Shown: positions 23,761 to 52,438, numbered from the stretch's first letter. The stretch is DNA of 64,000 bases from Cyanophora paradoxa CCMP329 (GCA_004431415.1 QPMI01000685.1:17935-81934), one strand, 5' to 3'. Numbers and translations: made by a program. The notes: generated from the sequence alone by a model not told the origin.

Positions 23761-26700
23761 CGCCGCCGGATTCGACCACGAGCGGTTAGGGGCCGCGTGT
23801 ACTTCGACTGCAGCTGGATTGATATCACCCTGCACGTGAGGACGCCCGGTAACCTGTACCGATGCGTCTGATGCCTGCTGCCCTCCTCGTGATTGTCCTC
23901 GCTGCCCTCCGGTACCGGTATCCCTCCCGTCTGCCAGAGGACGCTGCAATCAGCTGCGCCCTCGCGATCGCCGCGCTCGATGCGTGATGCTCTGATCATG
24001 ACAGTCACGCACCCGACGGCGACGCCGATCGAACCATTTCTGGAGGGGGGCTGGCCGCCGCACAGCAGGGTGGAGCGCCGCCGCTCACCACCGGGTCGGT
24101 TGGAGCTTTTGCAGCCTGGGCCGAGCGCGAGACCTTCCAGAAGAGAAATCAGAGCAGATAGACGGTCGCAGCAGCGTTCTGGAACTTTAGACCTGATCAT
24201 TTGACGCCCCGCGAGTGACGCCTTCCGCGGAACTGTCGATTTGGCCTCCAGATGTTTCTCCCGCACAAGGCTTCGACCTCTGCGTTTTTGTCAGTACTGC
24301 GCATCGGCAGATTATATATAAGAGCAAGCGGTCGCGGGCGACGCGCCTGCTTGCAATTGCTCTCCGTATGCTCCAAAGCTGGCACTGCTCTAGATCTTGA
24401 CTTCTGAAGCTGGCGGGCCTTCGCATTTGAAACGTTAACTTGCTGGCCCGAACTCACACTCGAGCTCACGATCGTCTTTGGTGCTGAAGCAGTTGTCGAT
24501 GTCGAATCTGCGGCCTGGATCCGGAAGCCCAACAGGTGAGCGAGATTCTGCAATAGTGGCGGCAACCGCACCTGTGGAGATACCGATGCGGCAGCAGAAG
24601 TCGATGTCGACTGCCGAATGCTGGACGACCCCGATGCTGCTGCCGTCTTGACTAGCTTCTGCTGCTGCGATTGCCGATCCTTCACATGTACAGAGGCACG
24701 CGGCTCCGATCGCTTATCTGATTTGTTGCTCGCCGACACTGGGACAGCGGGAGGGCGACGCCGGTATCCGCAGAAGTAGAGCGCGTTGGGGTCCATGCAA
24801 TACGAACACAGGCTGTGGTACTCCTCGCGACCGGGCTTGAACCACCGGCTGCATTTCAAACAGAAGATCCGGTTAGCGAGCTTGTAGAGCTTCTTCAGCA
24901 GCTGTCGCGGGGTCGAAGAAGAGGGTACATCGGGCTTCACGATTTTGGCCTTGCCGCAAAAAATCCTCGCGCTGCAAGACGGGCACTGTTCGAAGAACTT
25001 GCGGGCGGTGAACGTTGCTTTGCACGCAAGGCAGCAGTTGTTGGATCTAAGTGTGAAGGCTTCTTCGATATCCTGCTGCGAGTCTTCTGGCTGCGGGGAG
25101 GTTTCGACGGGTGCGCATTCCTCCATGACCGACGCCACCAGCTTTTCAGAGACTTCGGGGGGAACAGGGGGGACTTGATGGCCCTCCACGGCAAGGCTGC
25201 TTGCACAGTAACACCGCCAAAGAAGAGCCCTGGCGGTGTGGTCATGAGACAGTTCGAGCTCGCGCTACATGACATAATCACGTGCACCTTCGAAGAAATT
25301 CAGCCATAATCCTCGAAGACCCGACGGAGTGCCGGAGGCGCATAATGCGAGGGATGATCTCGGAGTCGACTTCTCGCACAACATCTTCATAAATATCGCA
25401 GATGCCCCAACAAACTGCAAATATCGCGAAGGTCGATACAAATCCAGCGTCACCAATGCATGCACATGCATATGCATGAAAAGCAGCATCGAACCGACTC
25501 GCTCGTAGCGGGACCGGATGCAGTCGGGGTGACGAAGAATGACATGCTCAAGCGCATACATGGCCCAGTCATAGAAGCGTTGTTTCAAGCACCACGATGC
25601 AACCACCTGCAAAACAAGATGCAAAAACGGATGTTACAATAATGATCAATGGAAATGGTAGCTATATGTATGCGAGTACTGCTAAGAGGCCACGCATACA
25701 CACCCTGTCTTCGTCGTCTTCCAGCGCAACGTCACTGATCGTGATGGGGTCGAATGCTCGCAGCAGGGCTTCGTCGGACACAGACGGTTTTCGAATGCCG
25801 ACAAATAGTCGCGCTGAGCTCAAGCACATTGGGCAGGATGCAAAGAACGACTTCGGCGGGAAATCAGCTCTGCACACAATGCACGAGCTCGTCTCCGGCA
25901 GGCTGAACATGCTTTCAATCGAATCTCGTGGTACTTCCTTTCCAGGAATGACCGGAAGTCCTTGGTAGTGGTCGACGACCGGCACTTGCGTCGCTCGATC
26001 AAGCATCGATTTCAACGCCGACGCGTCTTCACGGTGCAGCCTTGTCGAGAGGGGCTGCTGCAACATTCGTTGAACGGAAGCTGCTTTCTCCTCGTTGAGG
26101 CGAAGCAACGAGGGCGGCGGAGAATCGCTGCACTTCGCATCTCCACAGAAAAGAAGACACCAGCAGCCGGGACACCTCGCGTAGAAGTTGCTAGCATTCA
26201 CTGCCGTGAGACATTCAGGACATCTCAACCGCTGCAAGAGCGTGAAGTCTTCTTCAAGCTCCTTTTTCGACACCTTGAGCTCCGTGACCGACATGCCCCG
26301 AATAAACGGAAGGGGTAGCTGTTCTGGCTCTGCGGCTGCTGCAGCTGCCTGCGAGATTTGCGATTGCAATCGACCAAAATTTACTTGCATTGTCTGTGAA
26401 TGTGCATTTATATATGCTCGAACATGTGTCAGCCTGCGGAATCAACTTTAATGATCAGCTTCATGAAAATGATTTTCTTTGTTAGAATATACGTATACAT
26501 GATGCGAACTCACACTGAATCGAAAAACGTCACCACGCGGTCTGTTAGCAGATCGGGTTCCATCGACCTTAGATGGACTGCGAGCGACAGCGAGTTTGGA
26601 ATGATCGCCACGCCAAAAGCGTCGTGTTCGGCTATGCTCTTCCCTGACGGCATCCAAGCTCAAGGCATTAGTACGCATACTCGGGGGTTTCACGTGCAGG

Positions 26701-29700
26701 AGGAAGGAAGCTGTAACGCACGAAGCGAGTCGAATTGGCCGCAAAACGTCATGTGAAAAGGAGATCCGCCACTGACAGCACGCTTCGCCGATTTATACGC
26801 CAACGAACACGCATGGTTGAGAAGCTTAAGAACTTCAATCTAGAGGAGGCGCAAATCATGGTCAGCAAAATTCGCTTAAAATTCGGAGAAGAAACCGTGA
26901 ACCTTATTCAAATTGGCATCGGATCGCAATATCTCTGAAACGCATGAGTTCGAAAATTCGCATTCTGGATTCTGACTTGCATATGCATCGATGTCGAATT
27001 CGAAATCAAGAGCACCCTGAACCCGATTATTATTGTGCGTATGCGAGAGCAGAGACCAAGGTTATTGATGACATGCATTGTGTTACCTCGCCCTCTGCCA
27101 TGTGCGTTAAATTCATCCGCATGGTTTCTGCAGTCGCCCCCATCGATTGCAATTCAAATCCTTGCGATTCTGAACAGAAAGCTTGGCTTAATCCAACAGA
27201 AATTGATATGAGAATCAATATTCAGATCCCATAGAGCACCTTCAGAGCGAGAAGAATCGTCGACGTCATCATGTGAAGTCGAAATTCCACACGCAGGTAT
27301 GCATGTCTCGTTCATATTCACGCGCGGTAGAGACACCTCACAGCTCTTACTGCTCAATCTTGCAATCGAAATGTCAGCATTCGATGGCGATCAGAAGTCC
27401 AATTACAGCTTACCCGATGTGATCGATGCCGGCCGCAGATTCTACAGCTGCAGTCTGGCCATGGATATCAGACGCCTTAAATAGTTCTGGGTCCGATGGA
27501 GCCTTGAGCGCTAGCTTGGGTCCAAAGCAAGCCTCGCTGGTGCCGCATGGCACCGTGGCCGTTTCCGCCGTGCACGCATATGCATGCGCCATCGATATCC
27601 GACCATGACTCGAGCTTGCTTCAGGTCCGCCGTCTGCTTGCAAGTCGTTGGCCTGCAGCCGCTTCGAATTCTCAAGAGCCTTTTTCCGCACACTGTGGAT
27701 ACCGTGATTAAAAGCTTTGCACATGTCGTTGTCGTAGGGATCGCGCACGTTTCGAGGAGTTTCTTGCTCTCGTCATCAGTGCAAGTGGAAGCTTTTGCGG
27801 CGAGTTCTGCTGCGACTCGATCGGCCTCTTCAATCACGTCTTCAAAGAGCCCAAGCCCCATCCAGCAGCCTGTGCATGCTCTTCGTTAAGACAGCTTGGA
27901 AGTTTGCGCACGTATACGTGGACGGTCGAGCGGAAGACGCGGCAGTATGGAAGTTTGCGCACGCAGACGGTCGAGCCGAGTCGTTATGCAGGAGGGATCC
28001 CGGGCGATCAGGGCATTTAGGATGGGTCGCGCCTTTGACCACTGCGACTGCTTGAGGAGCCGCGCAACAGCAACCTGCGCATGGACAGCACCAGACAGCA
28101 ATTCAAACAAAATTAAATCAAGCTCGAAAATCAGGTCTAGCTATCGCTTTTGTCTGACCTTCTGAGTCTGGATCTCTTTTCCAGCAATGTGAATGCCTGC
28201 AGCTGCAGCTGGTCGCGATGGCTGTTCAACAGCTCCAGGCTGCTGTCTCAATCGCTGCTTTTCAGATACGGCTGTGTCCGGCTGCCCGGCTGATGTATTG
28301 ACTTCTGGTTTTCTGAGGTACGCGCAGAAGATGGCCTTCGAATCGGGAGGGCAGCCAGGACACCTCGTGAAATAATCGGACGCTTGGATTCGCTGCTTGC
28401 ACATGAAGCAAACACTCTCGTGCGCCTTTTTGTACATCTTCTTGAGCGTGTGGCGTGGAGTACTTGCTGGAGGGGGCGCTTCCATGGTGAGATTACATAA
28501 AGGTCGTCCATGGAAACATTCTATGTCGCAGTGTCGGCAGTGCGTGTAGAAGTTGTTGACAGTCAGAGGTTGTGTACAGTACTTGCAATACACTGTAGTA
28601 TTGGTTGGGATTGTGAACGACTTGGCAAGCTCTTCGTCAGGCATTCGAGTGCGAGGTGCGATCCCCGCTGGCAGACCAACGTCGGACTCATGACCGAGTC
28701 GATGTGCGAACAACTTGGATATGGTGAAGCTTATCTCAGAAGAAAGTGATACCGGCTGGCCCGTTTGAAGAGCAATTTGACTGCTTGCAAACATGCGCCA
28801 CTGAAGAGCACTGCGCAAATAATTGGCCATGAGTTTAATAATTTGATACAGCTGGCAATCCGTTGAATTCGCGATTAATGGTCCGCAATCAGTTAACGTT
28901 ATTATTGCAAGTCCCGCACCGGTCTAGCCAAGAATACAAGTTCAAGCTAGCACCGAAGCGCTCAAGCAGTGATAAAGCCCGTGGAAGAATCTCGGTATCG
29001 ATTTCTTTGATGATTTCAGCAGAGAATCCAGCAAATATAACACCCCAGCACACTGCGTGAACAATTACCATATGCATATACATCGATTGAAAGCAAGAAA
29101 AGCATTGGAATGGATGTGCAGAATCACACCTAGGCGTTCAACTCGCGACCGGATGCAGTCAGGCTCACGGTGGATAGCGTTTGACAACGCGAGCATGGCC
29201 GAAGTGTACTCTCGCTTCTCAAGGTACCAGGTTGCGCACAACTGCGAATGAACATGCGTGAGCCACATAGGCTTTACTAAGGGCATCTGTGCAACCGCAA
29301 ACCCGGTCTTCATCGTCTTTCAAGGCCATGTCGCAGATGGTGATTGGATCAAACGCTCGCATCAAGTCGCCCTCTGATACTGACGACCTCGTTTGCCCGA
29401 CAAACACATCCTGGCCGCAAGTGGAGCAACGAACAGTAAATGATCCTGCAGAGAGTCCACGGCCAGAGGCTGGCAGCTGAATTTCTGCGGTACACATGTA
29501 GCAGTTGAAGGGAGACGATCTCGGCAGTTCGAAGAAGCGCTCCAGGGTCTTCACAGGCACACTTGAGCTTGGAAACACTTTAGGCCCGCCGGCAGCAGGG
29601 GCCGTGGGCCCCTGCTGCAGCTGCAGTTCGGAAGCGTATGGGCATTTACCCCGCTGCGTCCACACATTCTCCCGCAGATCGACAGGATACGCTCCACAGA

Positions 29701-30917
29701 AGTAAACCTGGTCACATCCAGGACAGCGCGAGAAAAATTCGAGCTCGATAGGCCTGAACGCCGACTTGCAGGTGAAGCAATAAAAAACGTGTAAGAAACA
29801 AAAGTTCTGCCGCAAGTTTTCCGCTGGTGTGTCTGGGGGAGGCGGATCCGGAAGGGCTCGAGTTGCATGAGCATAGAACTCCTCGTCAGCGCACATTGCA
29901 AGAATGTGATTGCGAGCCTGATTGAGCCTAAATTACAAAGAGTGCGCAAGAAATGCGCGCACAGGAAAGTTAGACAGAGAGCAAAATAAAATGACGGCAT
30001 TTCATAAATTTAATAGCGCACATGTACAAAGCTGGCGAACGTTGCAATGCGGGTCGCAGCTTTTCAATCATATCGAGTGCATCAAGAAGATGCCCAGTAT
30101 CAATAAATCGATCTGCAGGCGTTCATGAGCTGCTGATCATGATCATGATCATGCGCGTGACAGTTCGAGCTGATCATAATGTTATATCCGGTCGAACGCA
30201 CACAAGAGTGTAAGTCCGAAATGGGGGGTGCGAAGGTACGCGTCCCAGGGGAGATTTTGTAGGTTTCGCACCCAAGACACGTTGAGAGCATTTTCGATCA
30301 ATTGCAAACACAGCACCATTTCCTGGATTTCGAAATAATTAAAGAGGTGGACTCGGAAGTCAACTAAAGCCTATAAATAGAGCTTGAGAAATCAAAGCGG
30401 ATATTCAATCGCTGACCTTGAACTTCGCTGGTAGCTCGCTGATAGATCGCACTTGGCTGCATACATTTTCGTTGTCTGCGGCAGGAGCCATTTGGATATT
30501 CTGTAGCAGATCGAGAGTCGAGAACCGAGAGTAAGTATACGTGGGAGAAGTTGAGCATGCACACGCGCGCACCACAGGGCCTTGACGTGTATGACGCTCA
30601 GATGCAGTGGACGATGACGGCTTCGACGTCGAAATCGCTGTGAAGTGCCCAGACAGTCTGGTGGATGAGGTGAGCCCATAACCATGTTCAGCCCGCGCCG
30701 TGTGCAGCAACTTGGAGATATTCGACAAAGCCTGCAGCTGATCAAAAAAAGAGACGTTCATTGAGCGCATCCGTGACCATGAGCTGGGCACCTCCTGCAA
30801 ATCTAGCCAGTGGACTTGGGCTGGAGATGGGGGAGCTGTTGTACCACTCCTCGATTCGACATGGGCTTTATTTCTTCCGTGTGATGAGATATCAGAGCTG
30901 GGATCCGGAGTTGACAT
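23760..30917 (-). CDS. 5' part of large gene (or tandem paralogs): eight CxxC..CxxC Zn-ribbon repeats and TPR-like helices in two duplicated modules
   Basis: ORFs 24197-25189, 25662-26390, 28141-28830 and 29219-29896 each hold two ribbons. The block RAFDPITIxDxALxDDEDR|..W....Y..AM.AL...I.R.PDCIRSR.ER is duplicated. Exon continuity was not fully verified. Confidence 0.65.
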
Positions 30918-32105
30918 AGCAGCAAACAGCTGCGCCGGATGGCCCTTCTAGCTGAAGAACTCGCGATCGATCCGGATTTGCTGTGCGGTGCGCGCGCCCT
31001 CATGAACGCGTCAGGATCAGGCTGGTCGGCATGTAAAGCTCAGCGGCAATTGAAGGCGACTCAGGAGCGCATGCACGTGGCGCGCCGGTTGGATGCGGTT
31101 GCTGCGGGCCGGGCACGTGACTGCGGCCTCCTCTAGATCTACGTACACCTTTAATTTACGTATACTGGCTAAAAATGGCGCCAAGCCTGCTGCAGCTGCA
31201 GCTGCAGCTGCGCCGCGCGCGGTACGTCGGAAGCTTGCGCGTGCGGCCGCGCACAGCACTAGTACTTGATCCGGATCCCGGAGGTGGAATTCAAAGCTGC
31301 AGCTGGAGCCTGGAACTGCCTGGCAAGCAGACGCTGCCGATAAGCTTCTGAGCCCTATGGATGTGCCTTGATGGCATCAAGCGCGTCCGCGCCGGTCGCG
31401 CGCGGCCCGAGCTCGAGCGAGTTTGGAATTCACGAATCGAAACCTGCGCGGCCGCGGCCTTGATGAGCGCGAGCGACGGCGTGCGGGGCGACGAGGTGGT
31501 TCTCTTTGCTCTATGCATCGAGTGGGTGCTCCTAAGATCGCCAGCGAGCCCGCTTTACTCCCTGCCCGCTCTCTCGCGCCAACCCGGCCCGTCTCGCACG
31601 CTGCGCCCTTGAGCTCGGAAGGCGAAACCTCTATGCATCAATAGGTGGATCTATAGGAACGCGCTCTTGGCGGTGGTTGGGTGCCGGCGGGTCTCTCGCT
31701 TGCGCCAACCGAGCTCGCACGCAGCACCCTAGGACTGAGCGCGGAAAGGGAGAACAGCGGACCCTCGATCGATTTCCGCCACCCGGTTCGTCGACGCTGC
31801 GCCACGGGCGGGCAGCTTACTTGGCATGCGCAGCTGCAGCTTGCTACAATTGTGCTGTATCCCCCGGCCGGGTTGGCCGCTGGCCGCTGGCACCAGTGCT
31901 GGGTTGGCCGTACGCGTGAGCGACTTTTTTGCCGAATCCGAAGTGCGCAAGCGGCCCGGCGGTACGGATCGCACCCGGAGATCGTGCGCGCCCGACATCC
32001 AGCCAGCGCCACGTAGAAGTCAGCGACCGACCAACCGTAGCACACGTTTCGCGCGGTGCTCGGGTGCGCCGACCGGCGGCGCGCAGGCCTTGCGAGATCG
32101 GTGGG

Positions 32106-39924: not shown

Positions 39925-40432
39925 TAGGGTTGCCGCTCCGTACGGAGTTCCGGGCAGACCACCCGGAACCGGAACTCACCCGGAGCTCCGCACGTTCCGC
40001 ACGGAGTTCCGCAGGTACTGGAGAACCCTAACAAAATGACAGAAAGGAGGCGCCCCCCTGCACGTAAGAGGCCTAGGGCCCCCAAATGACTAAGATACAT
40101 CCTATTCGTCATCGATATCCTCCTCCTCCTCGACCTCCTTCTCGTCGTCCTCCTGCACATGCACAGGTACCCCCCCTGGCCGTGCATGTTTCGCAGCCTC
40201 TCGCCGTCTGGCAACTCGATCGGATCGCTCCTGCTGCTCGGCGCTAATTGTAGCGCTCGGATTGCTGACTCTCCGGCCTTCTGGGCGACTGGCGCTGCAG
40301 GGTTCGAACCCGGGTTTTTGTATGGAGGCCTCCGCTCCGTACGGAGTTCCGCCCACCCACCCGGATCCGGATCCGGAACTCCGCACTCCGTACGGAGTTT
40401 CAGTGCCCCGGAACTCCGGGCCGGCAACCCTA
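39925..40432. mobile_element. Non-autonomous hAT-type DNA transposon (MITE, 508 bp)
   Basis: Termini TAGGGTTGCCG / CGGCAACCCTA and a perfect 8-bp TSD CGCCAGTC (39917-39924 and 40433-40440). Subterminal CTCCGTACGGAGTT / CCGGAACTCCG repeats. Confidence 0.88.
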
Positions 40433-40571
40433 CGCCAGTCCGAGAACTCTAGATCTAGGCGCCGGATGCATATGCGACTGGCAGATGTTGTCCTTATATT
40501 CGTACGGATATGGTGGCGGATGGCGGATTGGCGGATTGAAAGTGCTGGCGGATATTCGTACGTTTACAGTA

Positions 40572-40845
40572 TACTAGTATTATAGTAGTATATAGCTAAA
40601 CAGCGCGCCGTGCACGTGTAATTATAATTACATAAATGACAGAGCTCGAGAGTCGAGACTCGCCATAGAGCAGAATCTATATTCGGCAATTTATGATTTA
40701 TCGCCACGGCAATTCCGGTTTTGGGCGAATTCGGCAATTTGACAACGCGGCAATTAAAGCCGTCCTACAGTAGTAAGTACTAGTAATTATAAGTTAGTAG
40801 TAACCAGCGCACCGTGCACGTGTAATTATATAAATGACAGAGACT
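40572..40845. repeat. Imperfect ~65-bp direct repeat pair enclosing four CGGCAATT motifs
   Basis: TACTAGTA..CAGCGC(G/A)CCGTGCACGTGTAATTATA..TAAATGACAGAG occurs at ~40572-40645 and ~40779-40845. Confidence 0.7.
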
Positions 40846-41961
40846 CACACGTCACAGAGTGACCCTTGGCCAATCAGAAAGATTATAGCTACGTCAACGC
40901 TCAACATTTAGTTTTTTTAGAAAAGAATACAAAAAATGTTCACGTAGGTAGTGCGCTCCCCATTGGTGGGCTGCCGTGGGCATGCGCAGGCTTTACTAGT
41001 ATTCAAGTCCGTCGGCGCCGCTCCCCGGCGGGACCCGGGAAATTGGAGGGAATCCGGATCCGGGATTCCGGGGCCTTCCGGGCCGGGAATCCCGGGATTA
41101 GAGCTGTACATGTGCGCAATGCGCATGCTCGCCGATCTCGCGAGTCGCTCGGGCTGGCCGGCCGAGCGTCGACGATCGACTCCGCCGGGCCGCGGGGCGC
41201 CCGGGCCCGCCCGGCCCCGCCGCGCCCGCGGCCGAGCCGCCGGATCCGGAGACGGCCCTGCCCGGCGGATCGAGTCCGGGCCCCGGGGAGATCATCGCCG
41301 AGTCGGATCCGGCCATCATCATCATGACATCATGGCATCCGGGCATGATCCGGCCCGCGGCGGGAGGACCAGAAACTGGCAGAAAGCGAATTCGAACTTG
41401 GGAAGCTCCGGCACTGCAGGCTGGCACCGCAGTACTAGTGGCACGTACCGACGTCAACCAGCAGCAATATCGCAGGATTCGCAGCTACCCGGGTGACCGC
41501 GCGCAGGCTCCGCAGCACTGCGGCAGCAGCCTGCATGAGGCTGCATCGATATCATGGCATGACGGCAGCATGCCATGATGAGTACCGGCCGCGGGCCTAC
41601 CGGTACCGCAGTACCGTTGTACGTATCATAGTATACACTGCCCTACGTACGCGTATACCGTAGCACACTCAGTGTGTGACTAGTACAGCTGCACTGCAGT
41701 CGCCGCGCCTGCTCAGTGACTACCGGCTATTGTGCTTACAACAGCAGTATCGCAACCATACATAGCTACAGGCTACGTATACAGCCGCGCAGCCTGTAGC
41801 GCGTAGACGGTCGCAGTGTTGCGCGCACGTGCACGTACGCGTTCCCGGCGGCCTCGAGCTCCGGATCCTATAGCCACTAGGCTATGGTAACGTTAGCGAT
41901 CGACAAGCTTAAGAGTCTTGCACGCCGGCGCCCGCGGAGTCGTGCACGTGCACACATGTAC

Positions 41962-44900
41962 ATGGGACAGGCTAGCGCTGAGGCTGCGCGGCTGCTGGCG
42001 GCGATCGCTCTGTGCCTCCAGCTTTTGGGACTCGGCTTGCCGGTTTCGGCAGCAGAGCCCAACTACGCAGCGTACGGGACTGTCGTCGTGCCATCGGGTC
42101 CGTTCGTTTTGCAGAGCCGGTGGGACCCATGCCAGTGCGTCCGTCCTGGTCACGGTATCGCGAACGATAACAAGCAGTGGGTGATTGCTGGATGCGACAA
42201 CGTTTTTAACTGTGAGCTCATGATCAATTGCCTCCCGCATTGATTGCCTCCCCCATTAATCCGCTAACGACGCGTATACGTATGCGGATGTATTTGCAGC
42301 GACCTCGGGATCCGGGCCATTCTGGTTCAATTGGAACGCAACGGCAAACAACTACGGCCGTCTGACCGGCTACGGCGGTAAGGTGTTGAAGATCACAGAT
42401 CCCGGCGCAGCCACCACGACTGAGTTTAGCGTTTCTCTGGGTGGCGTGCGTGGTCTTTTTAACTTGTCACAATCTCATCTTTCTGAAGCTTTGAGCTTAA
42501 AATTGATCGTCTTTTGTGTGTTTGCCCCCCCCCCCCCCCCCCCCCCCCTGTTTGGCATCGCAGCCCAAAGACATCTCGAATGCAGCAAGCTTTACGTACA
42601 CAGGCATGGACTCCCAAGTGAAGTTTCTGAATGATTCGACGGGATGCGTGCGAATCGTGTCAAGGCTGGCAAGCAACGTCATATTATTCACTGGCCATGT
42701 CGGACTGAAGAGGGGCGCTGGCCAATATTCGACCTTTATGCTCGACAACAGAAACCTTGCTGGTCAATGACACATTTATGTTTTCATTCGATCAGAAGTT
42801 TGGGCTCTAGGGCTGATTTGTAATCTCTCGCTGACCATATGCATGTATTACGTATGCATCGACAGATACTAGCTCGACGTGCTGGAACCTCCTCCAAGAA
42901 CCCCCAGCTCTGCCAGCGGTCATTCCTGTTTATAATTATGTTTTCATCATCCCAGATCGCTTTGTATATTAAATGCGCGCGCTTTGACTTTCCTTCATGC
43001 AGACTTGCCGGCCGAGAGAGCCATTCCGGCTCAAGAGCGTGGCGGACACGAGCAAGTGCATCACAGTTGACAGTGCAAGCAGGAACTGGACGCTCACGCC
43101 GTGCGGTACGCCGACAACTTTCTATCACTCTCCAATCTTGAAGTCGGCCCTCGAGATCTGATCCGAAAATTCAGAGTCCCCGTGCACTCCTGAATCGAAC
43201 CAACAGTGGTGGTCTGTTGAGCCAGTCAGCAATCCAGACCTCAACTACGGATTCCGGATCGCGGACTTCCGCGGAGACATAGGGGACCCCATTCCCTCCC
43301 CAGACCCTCGGAGTGCGTATCAGAAGACTCTCGCTGGATCCGCCGAGTCGCTTGCCGCGGTGCGAGCACATGTTTGTGATAGCAATTAACGTATATATTC
43401 GCGAATTAATGCTCTCTCGCTTTTGCGAGTAGCACCGAGGTGGTAGGTTTCTTCCGCTCACCAATAACCGGCCAATGAAGTCCAGCTCGACGAGGGACGC
43501 GGTACTCGACCAGTTCCTCCGTTTCACTACCTACCACTTCAATGCGACCTTCAACGCGCACCTCGTGCGTGAACGACGCGCCATCGCCAGCGCTTCCTGT
43601 TCTTTTCCAAATTAAATCCCTCATCAGGTTGCCATCATGTCGATAAACTCGTACATGTCGTACCTGACCGCACCACTGAGCACTACCGGAGCCATGCGGG
43701 AGGTTCTGGAGTGGGACGACGGGTACTCTTTGCCAGGCGAGTTTATCACGGCATCGAATCCGAATCCGGGCTACCCGGCCGGCGCGACTTTTGCGGACAT
43801 GGCCGCGCATAATGGCTGCCCCAGCTGCCTCTACTGGCACTGGGGAGCCTTCAAAAGCATGAAACCCAATGTAGAAAAGTATGACCCCGAAGCGGCCGAC
43901 GATTGGAACGTCCCAGAGCAACTATGGATCGTTCAGGAAAAGAGCGAGGCCTGCCCCATAGCCACACCATCGCCCACGGCTACACCGTCGCCTACGGCCT
44001 CTCCTTCGCCAATGGCTACACCGTTAACGCTGCCCGTGGATACGGCCACTCCGTCGCCCATGGCCACTCCGTCGCCCATGGCTACTCCGGATCCGTCATC
44101 AGTTAATGACCCGCAGCCGGGCAAGCTCCTGCCAGTTGTGAAGATCGATGTGAGTCGCGATCGTATCTTTGAGCAGCAACCCTTGAGCTTATTTTTTTTA
44201 TTTTGAGCTCGTGATGATCATCCCCCGCCCACGTGCATGCTGCATGCGCAGCTCGAAACATCACCGACGAAGGACCCCACCGCTCTTGTTCCGTCGAAGA
44301 CCCTCCTGATGCGCTGCCGGTCGAACGTCACCCGCGATCCGAACTTCCCAAACATCGCAGTGCAAGGATGGATGGCGCCGAATAACGAGTCCGAGCTGGC
44401 AGACCTCCTGAGGTAAGACATTTTTAGTAATACTTATTAACCAAGTTAATTAAGAAGCTTTGAATAATGGCAGCCTTAAGCTGCAGCTGATCACGCGCGT
44501 TACTTTCATTTCTCAGTTATCTGACCGCGGGCGCAACGAAAGCCGAGAACATGCTAGCCTTCCGACCCAGCAGCAGGCCCGCCCTTGTGTACGGTTCGCG
44601 ATATCGATGTTATATAATTATGTACATGCGTATGCATGCGCACATGTAAATGTGCGGCCTCGAACTTACATCGCCGCGTGCACGGATCGAACAGATAAGG
44701 AGTACATCTTGCGCTGCTACGCGAGCTACCCTGGGGCTCCGCCCGAGGAGGTCGTCTACGACGAGATCCGCGTTCGGCTTCTCAGCCCGCCGACGCCCGG
44801 CACATGCACGGTGGCGCCGCCGGAGGGAATCGCCCTCCAGGATACGTTCACGGTCACGTGCTCGAGCTGGACGTCCCCGCGCATCCCATTGAACTACGCG

Positions 44901-47900
44901 CTGCGGGTGCGTGCCTCGAGCTCCAGTCGATCTAGATCTGATCTCGCGATTGCATGTCTCTGAATTGGCCAACGCGGCTTCGCAGCTGCCCTCTGCAACG
45001 GGCAGCACGCTCCTCGTCCCCTCTCAGGAAAGCCCCGTGATGTCCAACCTCGTCCTCCCGGTCGGCAACCCCGTCCGGCTGATCGCAACCGTCTGTGACC
45101 GAAACGGTGGATGCTCGGGTCTGCTGCCCCGAACAAAACGATTTACATATCAATTTCCAATCGCTTTCACCTCGTCTGAACGTGAAACGTTGACGGAGCA
45201 GAACTTCCACTCAGTGTTATTGTCCGGGCTCCGCCGGACGTCTGTGACTCGTACAACACGCGCAAGGCAGCGCTCGATGCTTCCGCGGCACAAATGTCCA
45301 GGCGGGATTACGACGCCAGCGTTCTTCGGTCCGTTATCGCGACGGCAAAGCAGCTTCAGGCCGAAACCGTCGGTGAGTATCCGCTCAAGTACTTAGCGCT
45401 AGCAGAAGCACATACGTACGCGTATACGCATGAGCCCGAAATTTAATGCAAATGAACGTGCACGTGCATATGTACATATATGTGCGCGTCGCGTGCCAAT
45501 TACTGCAGTTCCGGCGACTAAAGCTTCCTAAATGTGTATATGTTAATGTACTGATCATGAACCTTTCCACAGCGAAAACCACCACAGAAAGCTGCGTCGG
45601 GGGCCTTATCGTGGACACGTGCAGCGCGGCGGGGTCAGCCGCGTCTGTCTCTGACAAGGTGCAGGCCATCTCGGCCATCACAGATGTTGCTCAAGTCGCT
45701 GCGCGGTGCGCGTATCCTGATCGAGATTAAATATGACTCATACTTTCTGTGCCTGGTCCGTTTACCATGCATATGCACACAAACCAGGCACACAAACACC
45801 ACGCAACAAAAACGACTCTTTGCTTGCTATCCCGCGCTTGATGCGTGCGAGGTACCCGAGGACATGACTGACGCGATTCTCGATGCGGTGATTGCATTGC
45901 AAGAGCTCGAAATCATGTGGATGCATAGCTAATGCACGCCTTCTTTATGCGCTGCGCACCCCGCAGGCCGACCGGTCCGTATCCGCGGCCATCAGCTCCA
46001 AAGACTGGACTCCGAACACGGCGGGTGGTCTCCAGCAGACGCAGAGCGGGCAGCTTACAAGCCCCCTTGCCGGCATCCTTAACGACCTCATCAAGGGTCC
46101 CGAAGAAGCCCGCGCAAGGTGCAAATAAAGCACGCATCATATGTAGAAGCGCCGGCCGGATCGAGATCGAAACTGAACACCAGCGCGTCGCCGAAGGTGC
46201 CGTGATTGCGGCCAAGGTTTCCGAAAGAGAGCGGTCGACTCGGTGTCTGTTACGGCCGGAAAGAGTGTGCCCTGTACTTCTTTACCGCGCTCGAGCTGTG
46301 CCTGACCTCTAGATCTGCGCCCTGCAGTCTGCTTTACGGATATCCGCCCCTACTACCCAGTCCCGACCGACGCGACGTCGAGAATATCCAGGACGCGGGT
46401 CTTCCTTCCAGCGGGAGTCAAGGTACATATGTACTTCGATGTGTTCTCTATGGCTGCGCATGCTCGAGCTCCGCTGATCATGAGCATTAACTCTTGGCAG
46501 AACTTCGTACCGCGCAACGGAACTGACGGGTTTGTATTGCAGCTGCCTTTGATTTCGTCCCCTGACTATGGCTGGATACGTATGTCGTCTTGTATTAACA
46601 TATAACTAGATTTGCTGTTTCGGTGATCAACATGGAAGAAAGCCCTGTGCGCTGCTCGCACCCTTCGCGCTAATGGCGTATACGCACTCATGCATATGCT
46701 TGGGTTTCCTGCGCGCGCAGCATGCGAATGTGTTCCTGGGTGTCGCAGGGGTGCCCGGAACGGCCTCCTTGACCGGATACTTCGTCGGTGAGTTTGCGAT
46801 AATTTTCTCTCTCTTGTTGTTTAATTGAATTTTGTTTTCGCCCATACCGACGTCGACGGCGCAGATATCTCCGTGCTCGGGTCTGTATACGTAACACGCT
46901 TTAGCTGTATATATAGTGACGGCTCTAGCGGCGGCGCAGGCGCCCTCATAATTATATTTAGCTATAGAATTGCAGTCCGACGAACTGCCGCGCGCAGTTC
47001 GGAAGTAACGGGGGTTGATTCAACCACTCCCATCATCATAGGTAAACCTAACTGCGTCTGCTTCGCCCGACATTGCAATTGATTCGGCCCCGATCGCGGA
47101 AGAAAAATTTAATAAATTAAACGTTGTTTTCGCTTGCAGAAATACCACTCAAGAACAGGACTGGGATGCCCACCACGCAGCAGGTCACTCCTTCCACGCA
47201 AAGTCTTCCACCTGGCGCCTGACGCACCTATCCGGAGCGCAGTACTTGCTCTTCTGGAATGAGACGAGGAAGTCGTGGGACCCGTGCGGCCTGCCGCTCA
47301 ACATGGCCGTGGGCGATCCCGAGGACACGTCGAGCGTGGGCGACATGTTCCAGCGCGACGGCGTCTGGTGCGAATGTACATGCGCCGCGCGCGCCGCCGT
47401 CCATCAAAATCGATTCATACGCGTATTCTTCCGCTGTCTGACGGACGCCTCCAGGTATGCTCGGGGCCGCTGCACGCACTTGACCACCGTACTTGCTGCC
47501 TTTCTTTCTGTGGCTACGGGCTCAAATGAATTGATATGTATCTCGTCTTCCTTGTACAGTTCACTACGGGCGCGCTCATACCTGGTACCGGTACCGGTGG
47601 CGCCGGCGCGGCCATGAGCTCCATTCCGGGCTTCGAGTCGAGGCCCACCAGCGAAATCTCCAGTGACAGCAACAAACAGGTTTGTCAGCCGAACCGCGTT
47701 TTTTATGAGCTCTTGACAATCGTAAGCTCAAGCGCATTAATTAACCGAGCCGCGCAGATGGCAATCATTTTTCCCATCGTGCTGGGTGTTGGCGCAATCG
47801 TTCTCGTTGTGGGCAGCATTGTGTTGCTGCGGAAGTGCGCAAAGGCAACCGCGCTGGCGGCGCCGGCTCGGAACCGCAGCGCGCTGGTAATCGACGTTGC

Positions 47901-48571
47901 GGGAGCGCTAGCGGCTAAGGGAGAGGCGATCAATGGGCCGTCTGTGCACGAGCGCCTCACTTCCTCGCACGATCACCTCAACATCTACACGCTTTTTGAT
48001 GTGCGCCCTGTCGCTTGGACCGTCGGACTCGCGTGCACGTGCCCAATATTAATCATGATCGCTTATCTGGGCGCGCAGGAAAAGGACAAGCGACAGAACC
48101 CGACGGAGTCTGAGGCCGAGCGGAGGATCCGCAGGGCAGTGGCGGTCGTGTTCGCACTTTCCCCATCGAGCGCGGCGAGCCTCGAGTGCCGCAAGTGGGT
48201 CGACCTTGCCCGGCGACTGAACAAGCCCATCTTCGTCGCCGAGTACGAGCAGGTGCGAACTCCCCCGAGTCCATTATTATTGCAATTGTAACCATAAGGC
48301 ATTCGTGCTTTCAGCTAGCTATAGTTTGAGCCCCGTGCCACGGTGATGCAACTCGCATTCGATATCGCTCAATGAGTACGTCGCGCAGGTCTCGCTCGAG
48401 TGGATGGACCCGACGCTGGCGCTGGCGCTTAAGGGACGCCCTCAGTACGGGTTCAAGGCGCAGGACGCGCCGCACCACGACGGCCGCCTATACGACCTTG
48501 CCCGACGCCTGCGGGGCCACGGAGTCAGCGAGACCACCGGCACGTTGGAATCAGTCCATGTTAGGCTCTGA
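41962..48571 (+). CDS. Single-pass receptor: signal peptide, ricin-B-like lectin repeats, Pro/Thr/Ser stalk, REJ module, GAIN/GPS, TM, TIR-like domain
   Basis: Signal peptide LLAAIALCLQLLGLGLPVSA; QxW lectin motifs (PCTPESNQQW, EQLW); ATPSP repeats; REJ PPTPGTCTVAPPEGIALQDTFTVTCSSW..PLNY..LPVG; GPS GRCTHLTT|F; TM IIFPIVLGVGAIVLVVGSIVLL; TIR-like IRRAVAVVFALSPSSAASLECRKWVDLARRLNKPIFVAEY. Confidence 0.8.
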
Positions 48572-48740
48572 TTCCGCTCGAGCTCACGTGTGCCTGCCGG
48601 CCCACGCGTATACGTACGGCCATTAAAAATAGCCCATGAAGCGCGTTCAAAAGCGGTTACAGTATATATATACGTGCACGTGCACGTGCACGTGCGCGCG
48701 TAGGATAAACCTTGTGTATATATAATTAGTAGGCTCGATC

Positions 48741-50102
48741 CACTGGGAGCCAGAAATTAAGTTTACCATATGGTAAACTTAGGGGGTGGTAAAGGTGTGC
48801 CGTTTGCGTTACCACACGGTAAAGTCAGGGTGGTAAAGTCAGGGTGGTAAAGTTGGGGTGGTAAAGTTGGGGTGGTAAAGTTGGGGTGGTAAAGTTGGGG
48901 TGGTAAAGTTGGGGTGGTAAAGTCAGGGTGGTAAAGTCAGAGGGGTGAACTCGCAGCGTTACATCCCGGATCCGTGGTCGGAACGTCGACGTCGATTTTG
49001 GAGCTCGAGCTCCTCGGATGAAGAGCTTAGCACCGGTTGCGAAAACTGGCCAGCAGGAAGCGTTGATCGAAAGAGACTATCTAGAGAAGCATTTCGATGG
49101 AGACTGGGCCGCGGACCTGCAGAGCCCGCTGTGAAATCGGTGGTTGGAACGTCGATTCTGGAGATCGAGCTCCTCGTATCATTCACACGCTCAACAATAG
49201 CGCCAGTCTCGAAAATAGGCCTGCAGTTAGCATCGTTCGAAAAGAGCTATCCGCAGCAGCATTTAGATGGAGACTGGGTCGCGGACCTGCAGAGCTAGAG
49301 CTTCGAATTCGAATTCGGAATAGCGAATGCCGAGTCTGGATCCGGAGCACGAGCTCCGAGTTCTCGGGCCTCGGAGGTGCGCATGCATTCACAGCACTGC
49401 GCAGCTTTATATATCTTAAGCCCTCTAGCAAAGCCAAAGTTCACTCCGGTGACTTTGCTCCATGGGGAGAAGCCAGAGAGGGGTACCGGTCTCGTCGCGT
49501 ACAATTGTGCGCAGCTCTTATAGGGTGTCGCCCTGCGGTCGGAGAACTAGCTAGAGCGCGTGATCTAGCTAGCTATAGGCTTTAACACCGCCGGCTACCT
49601 CGGCGGTGCTCGGTCTGAGCGTTCGGTACGCGGCCATCGGTCTTGAGACCACAACTTGGCGCTCGTAGTTCGTTTGTAACGTAGCTGAAATCAATGCTTA
49701 CCGCATTGGAAGCGCCGTGCGCCGCGCCCCAGCCAGCTGTGGCGCAGAATGGTCGGGCCGCTGTAAAGTTGGCCGATGTCGGGCCGCCCAACAACCTATC
49801 CTTATAAGCTGCAATTCGTCTCTAAACGACCTTTTAGACCACTTGAACCAGTTAAGGCAGCCCGCATGCGTCGCTCTCTTGACGAGTTGTCCTCGCCTCC
49901 ACGCTGGACCACCGAAGCAACCGGGCCATCGGCGCTCAACGGATCTCGCGCACTTATGCCTCTCTAACCACATTTAGCACGGCAGCAGTGCTCCCCCGCG
50001 CGGCTTTCCTAGGGGTGGTAAAGAGGGGTGTGGTAAAGTCAGCCCTAAGTGAGTGAAGTTGCAAGTTTACCATGTGGTAAACTTAATTCCTGGCTCCCAG
50101 TG
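48741..50102. mobile_element. Non-autonomous CACTA/EnSpm-type DNA transposon (CACTG termini, 1362 bp)
   Basis: 40-bp TIR CACTGGGAGCCAG(A/G)AATTAAGTTTACCA(T/C)ATGGTAAACTT with 2 mismatches and a 3-bp TSD ATC on both sides. Subterminal GGGTGGTAAAGT repeats; no transposase ORF. Confidence 0.9.
48818..48940 (+). repeat. 14-bp tandem array (GGTAAAGTTGGGGT / GGTAAAGTCAGGGT), about 9 copies
   Basis: Directly visible subterminal array of the CACTA element. Confidence 0.9.
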
Positions 50103-51114
50103 ATCGCGAGGCAGCCTGGCAGAACTGGGGCAGCTTACCATGATCAATTTTAATATTGAGTACGTATACTAAATAGCTAGCTAGTATATATACGTGTAAG
50201 CATGCGTATATACTTATACGCAGGCCCTAGGTGGACGACGCTCAGCTGCAGGCATGCATCTGTGCAGGCCGTTCGTGGCGTCGCGCGCGTTGCTGCAGTA
50301 CTAGTTGCTTCCGGTCGTAGCGATCGATATCCGTCCGTCGGCATGTACTGCAGCTGCAGTACGTATACGTATACGTGTACATGTAAAGCTGGACTTGCAC
50401 TTGTGTGCGCCAACGAAATCAGCGTTCAAGATGGGCAGATGCATTATATTCAATGATTCCCCCACTTTCCGGGATGGTGTTCTCGCAAAAGGTCATGGCG
50501 CCGGGAGGCCCCTAGGGGTCCTCGGGGGCGGCTTTGGACCCGGGAATTATATTCTCGGTCGACGTCGTACTCGTTGACCGCTGATCGCCGGCCCCTGAAA
50601 CGCCGCTTGCGCTGACTGCGACGCCGCGGCCACGGGCCCCCAATTGCAAGGCCCAATTGCAAATCTGCGCGGTACGCCGTGACGTGCATGCACGTGATCG
50701 AGCCCGGCCCCGGCGCCCGGCCGAGCGATCGATATCGATCAATATATCGATCGAGATAGGGAGATTGATTCAAGATTAATTTTCTGGAAGGAGATCAGCT
50801 CGAGAGGAGCTGTAGCTGGATCATCGGATTAGCATAATATGAAGCTGGAGAAGCTGGAGAATTAATTTCGAAGCGGTGGGATCTGTGCGTATACCGGTAC
50901 CCCCCGTCTTCGATCTTCGCTGCATACATCGATATCGCGATCGCTGCATAATTAATTAAGATTGAGGAGATCGCGATCGAAATTAATTAATTTAAGATTG
51001 AGGAGATCGCGATCGAGGAGAAGCTGCGGCTGAATATCGATGAAGCTGGAGAAGTGTCGGGATCTGTACCCCCCGTCTTCGTGCTTCGCCTTCGTCGCTG
51101 CAAAAATCGCCAAA

Positions 51115-51876
51115 ATGCGGCCCGTCGCCTTCGTCTTCGTCCTTCTCGCCTTCGCTGCGCTCGCCGGCGCCGCCCGCGCCGCCGAGCCGGAGGTCGAAGA
51201 CCTCGGCGTCCAGGTCGAGCAAAAGAGCCCCGGTGCGCGCGCGGCGGGGCGATTTTTCCGGGTGCTCGGCGCGCATTAAATTGCGTTTCGCAGGCCGCCG
51301 CCGCTTGAATCTTCTCCGTGCGGATTTTTCGCGCGCGGTTGCAATTGCACATCTCTCCGCATGTTCTCATTTCCGACGTCGACAGCAACGATCAATTGCG
51401 GAGACGTGCGGAACTGCTACGCGTGCACCGAGGCCGCGATCTGCGAGTGGTGCGCAATGCCTGCAGCTGTCTGATTACATCTCAGGAAGCCGCGGCCCCG
51501 AATCCCGCGGAAGCAGCAGCTGATCGAATCCGGTATACTTAGGTGCCCGACAGACAACAACGGCCAGGGCGGATGCCAGAACCGCGCTCGCGGCTGCGGT
51601 GGTGCGGTTTTTGCGCCATAGCCAGACGTCAACTCCGAGCTCGAGATCTAGAGACACAAGGATCAAATTCGAATTGAGTGCACTGATCATGGATGATGCA
51701 GGCAACGGCATCACGGAGGGGCAGAAGTGCCCGCAGTGCGGCTGTGGTGCGAAAACCGGGGCGGGTCTAGCGCTAGCTATAGCCCAGTAGGCCTCGAGAC
51801 AGCGTCCATTGACGCTGATTTCGCGGCTTCTGGGCCGCTAGGGGGCGTAAGCGCCTCCTTCATCGGGCGCTCCTAG
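51115..51876 (+). CDS. Small secreted Cys-rich protein with PSI-like domain
   Basis: Signal peptide MRPVAFVFVLLAFAALAGAARA. Spliced exons give CGDVRNCYACTEAAICEWCPTDNNGQGGCQNRARGCG|GNGITEGQKCPQCGC|GGVSASFIGRS*, a PSI-like C-x5-C-x2-C-x5-C-x-WC pattern. The last exon is uncertain. Confidence 0.72.
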
Positions 51877-52438
51877 ATCTGTCCGACCGCGCGCGGCGAG
51901 CTGGCCGCGCACCTCGGTGAGTGCCGCGGCTTTGAAGCGCTGATTTCGCCCACCCCGCCGCATGCGCAGTGCCTCCGCCCGGTGCCGGTGTCCCGCCGCC
52001 GCCGCCGCCGCCGCCGCCGCCTCGCTTCGCCTGAGCGGCCCGACTTGCTCGACGGTTTTCTGTGGTTCAGTCCTATAGCTAGTCTCACCAGCGTTAACTC
52101 ACTTCGTTGGCCGTCGGACGTCTTAAATGTAAATATTTCACGCACATCGAGATCCGGAGCGCGAGCTCGCTCGGCCGAATGGGCGTTGAAATTAGTGGGA
52201 TGCCTGGCGTGGTGCGGAGGAAGCTTCGGAATGGCGCGACATGCACGCGAATGAACTTGCACGGCGGTGGGCCCGGGGGCGGATGGGGTGGCAGCGCGAA
52301 ATCAAGGGGACTGCGGACCGCCTCTTCATCGATTCGCCCTCGAGCACAATCGAGTCATAGAGCTAGCCTAGCACGGGGGTCGCGAGGGGGACTAGCCTCG
52401 GGGCGAGCTAGGGCTGGGTCGGGGGGGCCAGGGGCCGC

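Follow-up and report, generated by a model that had tools for sequence, protein, structure and literature searches.

In the glaucophyte alga Cyanophora paradoxa CCMP329, positions 41956-48571 on the plus strand of a 64,000-nucleotide stretch of DNA (GCA_004431415.1 QPMI01000685.1:17935-81934; hereafter the window, from whose first letter all positions are counted) appear to hold a single gene for a type-I membrane glycoprotein of roughly 1,300-1,400 residues, in which a REJ-containing ectodomain is joined to a cytoplasmic TIR tail, a reading to which we assign a probability of about 60%. From its N-terminus onwards, the predicted protein would consist of a signal peptide, three ricin-like units that may form a beta-trefoil, an unassigned region, a Pro/Thr-rich stalk and a partial REJ domain, followed by a helix-rich and then a strand-rich region, a GPS-like C-x-H-L/T-x-F site (the slash marking the putative cut), a 40-residue stalk, one transmembrane (TM) helix and a divergent TIR-fold domain. 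A receptor of this general kind had been proposed in an earlier note drawn from the sequence; every string quoted there lies where the note had placed it, and the type-I layout that it described, with a signal peptide, Pro/Thr stalk, REJ domain, H-L-T site before a single TM segment and TIR-fold tail, is upheld. The source organism is confirmed by a database protein that is 99% identical to the tail, namely EukProt EP00741_Cyanophora_paradoxa_P023989 (tig00021719_g23165.t1).

Gene model and domain order

Across 41956-48571, short open pieces are joined by GT..AG introns, mostly of 63-100 nucleotides (nt), and a simple splice model based on dynamic programming, for which the clear exons served as training set and phases were checked by hand in part of the gene, finds a path that stays open throughout and comprises about 28 exons, or about 1,360 codons. 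None of the well-defined exons of the locus contains a stop codon. All exons given below lie on the plus strand.

The ectodomain is marked by a REJ domain whose core occupies three exons of the splice model (44695-44906; 44986-45118, with an alternative donor at 45108; and 45202-45372). The REJ signature named in the earlier note proves to lie far beyond chance, the Pfam REJ profile (PF02010) scoring 53.7 bits against a gathering score of 25 bits (E 1.7e-14 for 44694-44925, profile positions 284-355 of 452). The next exon extends the match weakly (E 0.022, profile 360-405), and the domain is partial, with the profile core 284-405 of 452 covered, about the core third. Partial REJ domains are also present in sea-urchin SpREJ8/9 and human PKD1L2 (PMC1934368). 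Upstream of the core, the splice model places exons at 44252-44412 and, with less certainty, at 44517-44593; the phase of the donor at 44413 requires an intervening exon before 44695.

Between the REJ domain and the membrane, three exons rich in amphipathic helix-like stretches (45573-45705, 45788-45887 and 45967-46118), separated in the splice model by introns of 79-82 nt, sit where GAIN subdomain A would lie, a placement inferred from position, with no Pfam match to these exons. The block that follows (46119-47139) is made up of small exons with a beta-strand-like look, among which 46330-46422, 46501-46579 and 46721-46787 are likely coding.

The GPS-like region, recognised by direct reading and in the splice model, begins in 47140-47367 (..LLFWNETRKSWDPCG..) and continues beyond an intron at 47368-47454 in a micro-exon at 47455-47488 (YARGRCTHLTT). 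Here C-T-H-L-T-T stands at 47471-47488, with the putative cleavage site H-L/T at 47477-47485, and removal of a 71-nt GT..AG intron in phase 0 (47489-47559) brings the Phe at 47560 next in frame, which bears out the CTHL/TTF motif that the earlier note had described with its Phe on the following exon. The single 'GPS exon' of that note almost certainly contains the further 87-nt intron at 47368-47454 (GTGCGA..CTCCAG), which it had not recognised; the GTGCGA donor recurs at 43360 and 48253, and removal of the intron takes out an odd Cys/Arg-rich insertion. An alternative intron running from 47455 (GTATGC) to 47559 was rejected, as it disrupts the frame. With an exon junction shown as a slash, the spliced region reads LLFWNETRKSWDPCG...FQRDGVWYARGRCTHLTT/FTTGALIPG, its final part being ...FQRDGV-W-YARGRCTHLTT/FTTGALIPG, and displays the GPS motif pattern W-x6-W-D-P-C-G ... 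R-C-T-H-L-T-T/F-T-T-G-A-L at 47246-47577, spread over three exons. This spliced reading, HLTTFTTGALIP, resembles the GPS site of polycystin-1. Only one Cys precedes HLT, and no more than one of the two usual GPS disulfide pairs is possible.

A stalk exon (47560-47679, FTTGALIPG...) supplies a 40-residue spacer from the GPS-like site to the membrane; its frame shows no stop from 47530 onwards into the TM exon. The latter (47758-48000), which is also the first exon of the published gene model g23165, encodes the TM helix at 47758-47829 (MAIIFPIVLGVGAIVLVVGSIVLL, then RKCAK) and the start of the TIR-like part at about 47866. With a Kyte-Doolittle value of 2.74, this helix is the sole TM segment across all exons, as the earlier note had it, and the RKCAK that follows on the tail side indicates type-I topology.

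One gene or two

Three introns connect the GPS-like region with the TM exon, namely 47368-47454, 47489-47559 and 47680-47757, which at 87, 71 and 78 nt have the gene's usual size and are all in phase. Read upstream from the TM exon, its frame meets no stop for 76 codons, a span that includes the stalk exon, and the open reading frame reaches the TM exon with or without removal of 47680-47757. Moreover, the ectodomain carries a signal peptide but lacks any membrane anchor apart from that of the TM exon, and the locus as a whole belongs to a single island of lower GC. Splice logic favours one gene to the degree given at the outset, and the published gene models have probably mis-split the locus.

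Several findings weigh against this reading. In the published annotation, one gene model stops short of the TM exon, where a separate gene of 199 amino acids (aa), g23165, begins. No contig from four probable RNA assemblies falls on 42650-48649, and no RNA run with the locus was found. The codon score of the stalk exon is better than that of the other two frames; the codon-usage comparison with a read-through and with the in-frame introns is weak, the codons being too few. The phases within 46119-47139 are not all reconciled, since two runs of the splice model differ there and contain exons of 8-37 nt, which are implausibly small; this block could hide an inactivating frameshift or missed micro-exons. 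In addition, Pfam, PDB and Atlas domain searches of the ectodomain, which were run exon by exon and not on the joined model, gave no match of the exon pieces to GPS in Pfam (PF01825, E<=10), in PDB or in Atlas, and no match to Ricin_B or beta-trefoil families (PF00652, PF14200) at E<=10. Because three exons share the GPS motif and introns divide the ricin-like units, both sets of negatives carry little weight. As regards the GAIN/GPS module claimed in the earlier note, the H-L-T motif is in place whereas the fold found no match on the exon pieces, and both its GPS/GAIN identity and its self-cleavage are putative, being argued at the level of the motif.

If the locus held two genes, the upstream one would read through 47489 to a stop at 47615-47617 and encode a secreted REJ/GPS-like glycoprotein, and g23165 would encode a 199-residue, N-terminally anchored TIR-like protein. 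We regard such a division as unlikely. It agrees with the EukProt model tig00021719_g23165.t1, whose first residue is the TM-exon Met, and with the read-through of the GPS exon (HLTTVLAAFL...), which is also GPS-like and meets its stop 42 codons later; nor does RNA decide the matter. However, a mere ~140 nt would separate that stop from the next start, and the frame upstream of the g23165 ATG remains open for the 76 codons mentioned above. Directly before this 'start' ATG stands CGCAG, an acceptor-type string that is also found ahead of 8 further acceptors in the splice model, those of both g23165 introns among them, and that has a frequency of 0.0033 per position (0.33%). Furthermore, the read-through tail offers neither a TM helix nor a glycosylphosphatidylinositol-type signal and has three Arg in its last 19 residues, and the annotated g23165 model is most likely ab initio, because no transcript is on record.

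The same absence of RNA, from the four assemblies and from the runs searched, would also suit a silent or decaying locus, that is, an exon-shuffling product of REJ-GPS and TM-TIR families that no longer yields, or never yielded, a working protein. The unreconciled phases and tiny exons of 46119-47139 point the same way, as do two features of the tail described below, the loss of the TIR catalytic Glu and the lack of a close relative anywhere searched, Cyanophora included. Such a fate is nevertheless distinctly unlikely in view of at least one fully open splice path over 41956-48571, the stop-free state of all well-defined exons and a REJ core well above threshold. Receptor genes are often lowly expressed or expressed only upon induction, and RNA missing from a few laboratory-culture assemblies is weak evidence.

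The TIR-like tail

On the preferred single-gene reading, the cytoplasmic tail continues from the TM exon into a TIR core exon (48079-48252), which carries the end of strand B, the BB loop, helix B, strand C, helix C and strand D, and into the last exon (48389-48571), which carries the C-terminal part of the TIR to about 48532 (helix D, strand E and helix E), a short tail and the stop codon TGA at 48569-48571. The tail model of g23165 comprises exons 47758-48000, 48079-48252 and 48389-48568, with intron 48001-48078 removed.

Evidence for homology comes from sequence profiles. When 1.84 billion (1.84e9) representative proteins were searched exhaustively with the tail exon by phmmer, six were returned: the g23165 model, four multi-TIR proteins from bacteria (E values from 8.6e-6 to 3.8e-4), each with 4-7 repeats that Pfam assigns to TIR_2, and a 354-aa repeat protein (...CELKCQHWVDL...), rejected as a spurious short-motif match. 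Against a hidden Markov model made from 21 repeats of these four bacterial proteins, the tail reaches 31.2 bits, compared with 8.7 for the highest of 2000 shuffles. The MAFFT alignment of the tail with the repeats spans strand B to helix E, covers both tail exons and contains the common motifs S-P-x-S-x-x-S-x-x-C and L-N-K-x-I. The neighbours of the tail in a protein language model (Atlas feature) are all TIR_2 clusters, and a protein homologue search with the tail model returned itself only, with no close relative, Cyanophora included.

Structure prediction is consistent with these results. With an alignment of 20 bacterial TIR repeats, AlphaFold2 (AF2) modelled the tail at a predicted local distance difference test score (pLDDT) of 70.5 overall and of about 90 over residues 90-160. 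The top Foldseek matches of this model are the TIRs of SARM1, TLR1, SPARTA and RPP1 (probability 0.9-1.0, E 6e-3 to 8e-2), and the top 47 rows of VIA-align are all TIR domains (Z 8.0-9.5, root-mean-square deviation 2.5-3.8 A, 105-128 residues, model residues 37-187), a fold match that is partly circular and dependent on the sequence test, as the alignment feeding AF2 was itself made of TIR sequences.

To the findings that count against the proposed receptor, the tail adds a Pfam TIR_2 (PF13676) score of 20.1 bits (E 9.3e-4) after splicing, below the 28-bit gathering score, with 16-18 bits for single tail exons (E 0.0034 for the TIR core exon). When no alignment was supplied, AF2 failed (pLDDT 47) and its Foldseek matches were meaningless. 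TIR strand A is absent from the tail model, MAFFT having placed the bacterial 'DVF' on the TM helix, and the tail had no match in a PDB sequence search, PADLOC or NCBIfam. A candidate for strand A is 'ALVIDVA' (residues 42-48). Another string considered for this role, 'PILIMIAY' (48040-48063), was rejected: it lies within intron 48001-48078, which the published model removes, it carries the GTGCACGTG motif typical of local non-coding DNA, and the TIR alignment closes without it.

At the position of the catalytic Glu stands Trp121 (48196-48198), giving C-R-K-W as against C-R-K-E or C-L-K-E in the aligned repeats, and the tail lacks the Glu in helix C, within C/W-x-x-E, by which the TIR NADase subgroup is defined. 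With Trp in place of the catalytic Glu, an adaptor would be expected rather than an enzyme cleaving nicotinamide adenine dinucleotide (NAD). Taken together, sequence and model suggest a divergent, probably non-catalytic TIR-fold domain.

If the tail were instead a remnant, or some generic alpha/beta domain of three layers that resembles the strand B-D core, it could likewise score below the TIR_2 threshold, leave the PDB, PADLOC and NCBIfam searches empty and lack both strand A and the Glu; the whole would then be a protein of adhesion or matrix type, comparable to sea-urchin REJ1 and ending in a short, unrelated tail. The VIA-align rows just under the TIRs, which belong to DNPH1 (a nucleoside 2-deoxyribosyltransferase-like fold) at Z 7.9, fit this as well. 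This alternative is made rather improbable by the wide gap between the profile score and its shuffles, by an alignment from strand B to helix E in which S-x-x-S-x-x-C and L-N-K-x-I are conserved and both tail exons take part, and by the TIR identity of 47/47 best structural matches; moreover, non-catalytic TIRs are the norm among animal receptors and adaptors. The TIR_2-like tail of the earlier note holds as regards homology beyond shuffles and structural matches to TIRs, but not as regards the Pfam threshold or a modelled strand A; with the catalytic Glu lost and the first strand unplaced, the signalling through TIR that the note proposed is putative.

The N-terminal region

In the N-terminal half of the predicted receptor, exon 1 (41956-42211), read directly, offers two possible start codons, 41956 and 41962, and a signal peptide at about 41956-42051 (...PVSA/AEP, the slash marking the predicted cut), whose hydrophobic core has a Kyte-Doolittle value of 2.12, more than any other ectodomain exon attains, in agreement with the earlier note. 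The exon also contains the first ricin-like unit (PFVLQSRWDPCQCV...QWVIAGC(D)), and its donor GTGAGC at 42212 is in phase with the acceptor at 42299. Exons 2-5 (42300-42445, 42564-42762, 43003-43105 and 43175-43359), placed by the splice model with a phase check by hand, carry the second and third units (KFLNDSTGCVRIV..NVILFTG and PFRLKSVADTSKCITV..NWTLTPC..NQQWW); PFRLKSVADTSKCI..WTLTPC lies within 43003-43105 and PCTPESNQQW within 43175-43359. A doubtful extra exon at 42866-42918 comes from the splice model. A run of about 23 C at 42527-42549, inside the predicted intron 2, is a likely spot for length errors of assembly or sequencing.

By eye, three units with a ricin-B pattern can be distinguished, in exons 1-2, in exon 3, and in exons 43003-43105 and 43175-43359 together. 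They follow the scheme hydrophobic-x-L-x-S..C-(I/V)-x-V....(V/W)-x-L-x-x-C, with a true Q-x-W in one of them only (NQQWW). Sequence search against PDB gave no match for exon 1, for the piece 42988-43158, which includes exon 43003-43105, or for the largest exon. The repeat strings on which the earlier note had based its beta-trefoil are present, but their ricin identity found no Pfam or PDB match exon by exon, and a lectin nature of the N-terminus, hence the 'glycan-sensing' role suggested for it, is a proposal from motifs.

Beyond a possible exon at 43433-43564, with an open frame and splice sites, the largest exon (43628-44149) encodes a Cys/Trp-containing region of about 110 residues and then a Pro/Thr/Ser-rich stalk (~43950-44100). 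The ATPSP stalk of the earlier note is indeed found here, encoded by two arrays of 18-nt tandem repeats (43964-44022 and 44044-44089, together spanning 43964-44089), and is probably O-glycosylated. The exon matched no Pfam family, and a protein database search gave low-complexity matches only, with a length filter that would hide a long upstream model.

Genomic setting

Outside two islands of lower GC (24000-32000 and 40000-52000, at 51-58% GC), the window has a GC content of 66-82%; the gene occupies most of the second island, and its entire span lies within it. A tblastn search with all exon peptides found no paralogue within the 64-kb window, and in the ~3.8 kb 3' of the stop codon (48600-52400) there are only short low-complexity open reading frames on both strands, with no recognisable gene.

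The island also harbours a palindromic motif, GTGCACGTG(CAC), at 40610, 40814, 41826, 41942-41953, 45458, 48033 and 48674-48694. It is confined to the non-coding parts of the island, namely the upstream region, introns and the 3' flank, and forms a five-fold overlapping run just 3' of the stop codon (48674-48694); the related strings ATGTACAT/GTACATAT are located in other introns. The motif may be a regulatory or repeat-derived element.

Introns 47680-47757 and 48001-48078 are both exactly 78 nt long, in frame and stop-free, so that retention of either would add 26 residues and leave the protein unbroken. The additional residues would fall in the extracellular stalk in the first case and in the BB-loop region of the TIR in the second.

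Relation to known proteins

The closest known layout is that of the one-TM sea-urchin REJ proteins SpREJ1, SpREJ8 and SpREJ9 of the PKD1 family, which have a lectin-type N-terminus, REJ and a GPS before the TM segment (PMC1934368). Shared with the Cyanophora protein are the REJ domain (partial in SpREJ8/9) and a single TM segment and, putatively in its case, lectin-type N-terminal modules and a GPS just before TM1. The TIR tail is what sets the two apart, together with C-type lectin domains in the sea-urchin proteins in place of the ricin-like units, a Cyanophora GPS supported by its motif, and the lineage, a glaucophyte alga.

With polycystin-1 and the adhesion G-protein-coupled receptors (GPCRs), the predicted protein has in common a REJ domain followed by a region that ends in H-L/T-x-F near the membrane. 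It differs from them in having no 11-TM or 7-TM bundle and one Cys only before HLT. Pfam gives TIR_2 only for the spliced tail, and no PLAT domain. With its single TM segment, no PLAT and no 11-TM body, the protein is not a strict member of the PKD1 family; nor, having one TM helix and no seven-TM bundle, is it an adhesion GPCR.

Toll-like and interleukin-1 receptors resemble it in their type-I topology, single TM segment and cytoplasmic TIR-fold domain, and the VIA-align matches of the tail include TLR1, TLR2, TLR10, TLR15, IL-1RAcPb and the Hydra TRR-2 TIR (Z 7.9-9.2). In contrast to these receptors, the Cyanophora ectodomain is not built of leucine-rich repeats (LRR), for which Pfam gave no match in any exon piece, or of immunoglobulin domains, and its TIR is nearest to bacterial repeats in sequence. 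The Toll-like resemblance is accordingly one of layout, limited to the TM and TIR half, and does not imply common descent with Toll-like receptors.

The bacterial multi-TIR proteins are the sole detectable sequence relatives of the tail, with which they share S-P-x-S-x-x-S-x-x-C and L-N-K-x-I-(I/F). They are, however, prokaryotic and contain no REJ domain, and their 4-7 TIR_2 repeats are accompanied by WD40, CHASE2 or Cache sensor modules. Most of these repeats keep the Glu after C-x-K and some lack it, whereas the Cyanophora tail has Trp.

The earlier note had called the architecture unfamiliar, and this is borne out for REJ plus TIR: no publication with both a REJ and a TIR domain was found in the literature searched, and the phmmer search of the tail exon revealed no protein combining a related tail with REJ among the 1.84 billion representatives. 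GAIN and TIR domains occur together in one publication only, which deals with the binding of latrophilin to a separate Toll-like receptor. The combination of REJ and TIR would be a product of domain shuffling.

Proposed mechanism and significance

In the single-gene protein, the pre-membrane region would be of the GAIN type and may undergo self-cleavage at H-L/T, as in polycystin-1 and the sea-urchin REJ proteins, after which the outer fragment would stay held on a stub made of stalk, TM helix and TIR. Ligand binding to the ectodomain, or pulling on it, would alter the clustering of these stubs and hence of their TIRs, and a tail devoid of the catalytic Glu would signal, if it does so, through TIR-TIR assembly with further TIR proteins of the cell and not through NAD cleavage. 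The basis for a self-cut at H-L/T with the fragments kept together is provided by polycystin-1, sea-urchin REJ3 and adhesion GPCRs (PMC1934368), and the mechanism as a whole is proposed by analogy with these proteins.

A stronger version, in which a self-cleaving GAIN/GPS module directly controls a TIR, shedding or pulling drives TIR assembly, and a glaucophyte alga has built an independent Toll-like pathway from polycystin-type parts, is put forward tentatively and with more doubt than confidence. To our knowledge, GAIN/GPS modules have so far been seen only before 7-TM or 11-TM bodies or short tails, and we know of neither animals nor plants that pair a REJ-GPS ectodomain with a TIR. Should the single-gene model prove true, it would mean that an ectodomain of the polycystin and sea-urchin REJ-GPS type and a TIR can be combined in one single-pass protein. 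It would also make it possible to study, in a simple setting, the effect of GPS cleavage in a protein that lacks any 7-TM or channel body on which the cut could act, and would provide a test of whether non-catalytic TIRs serve as adaptors outside animals.

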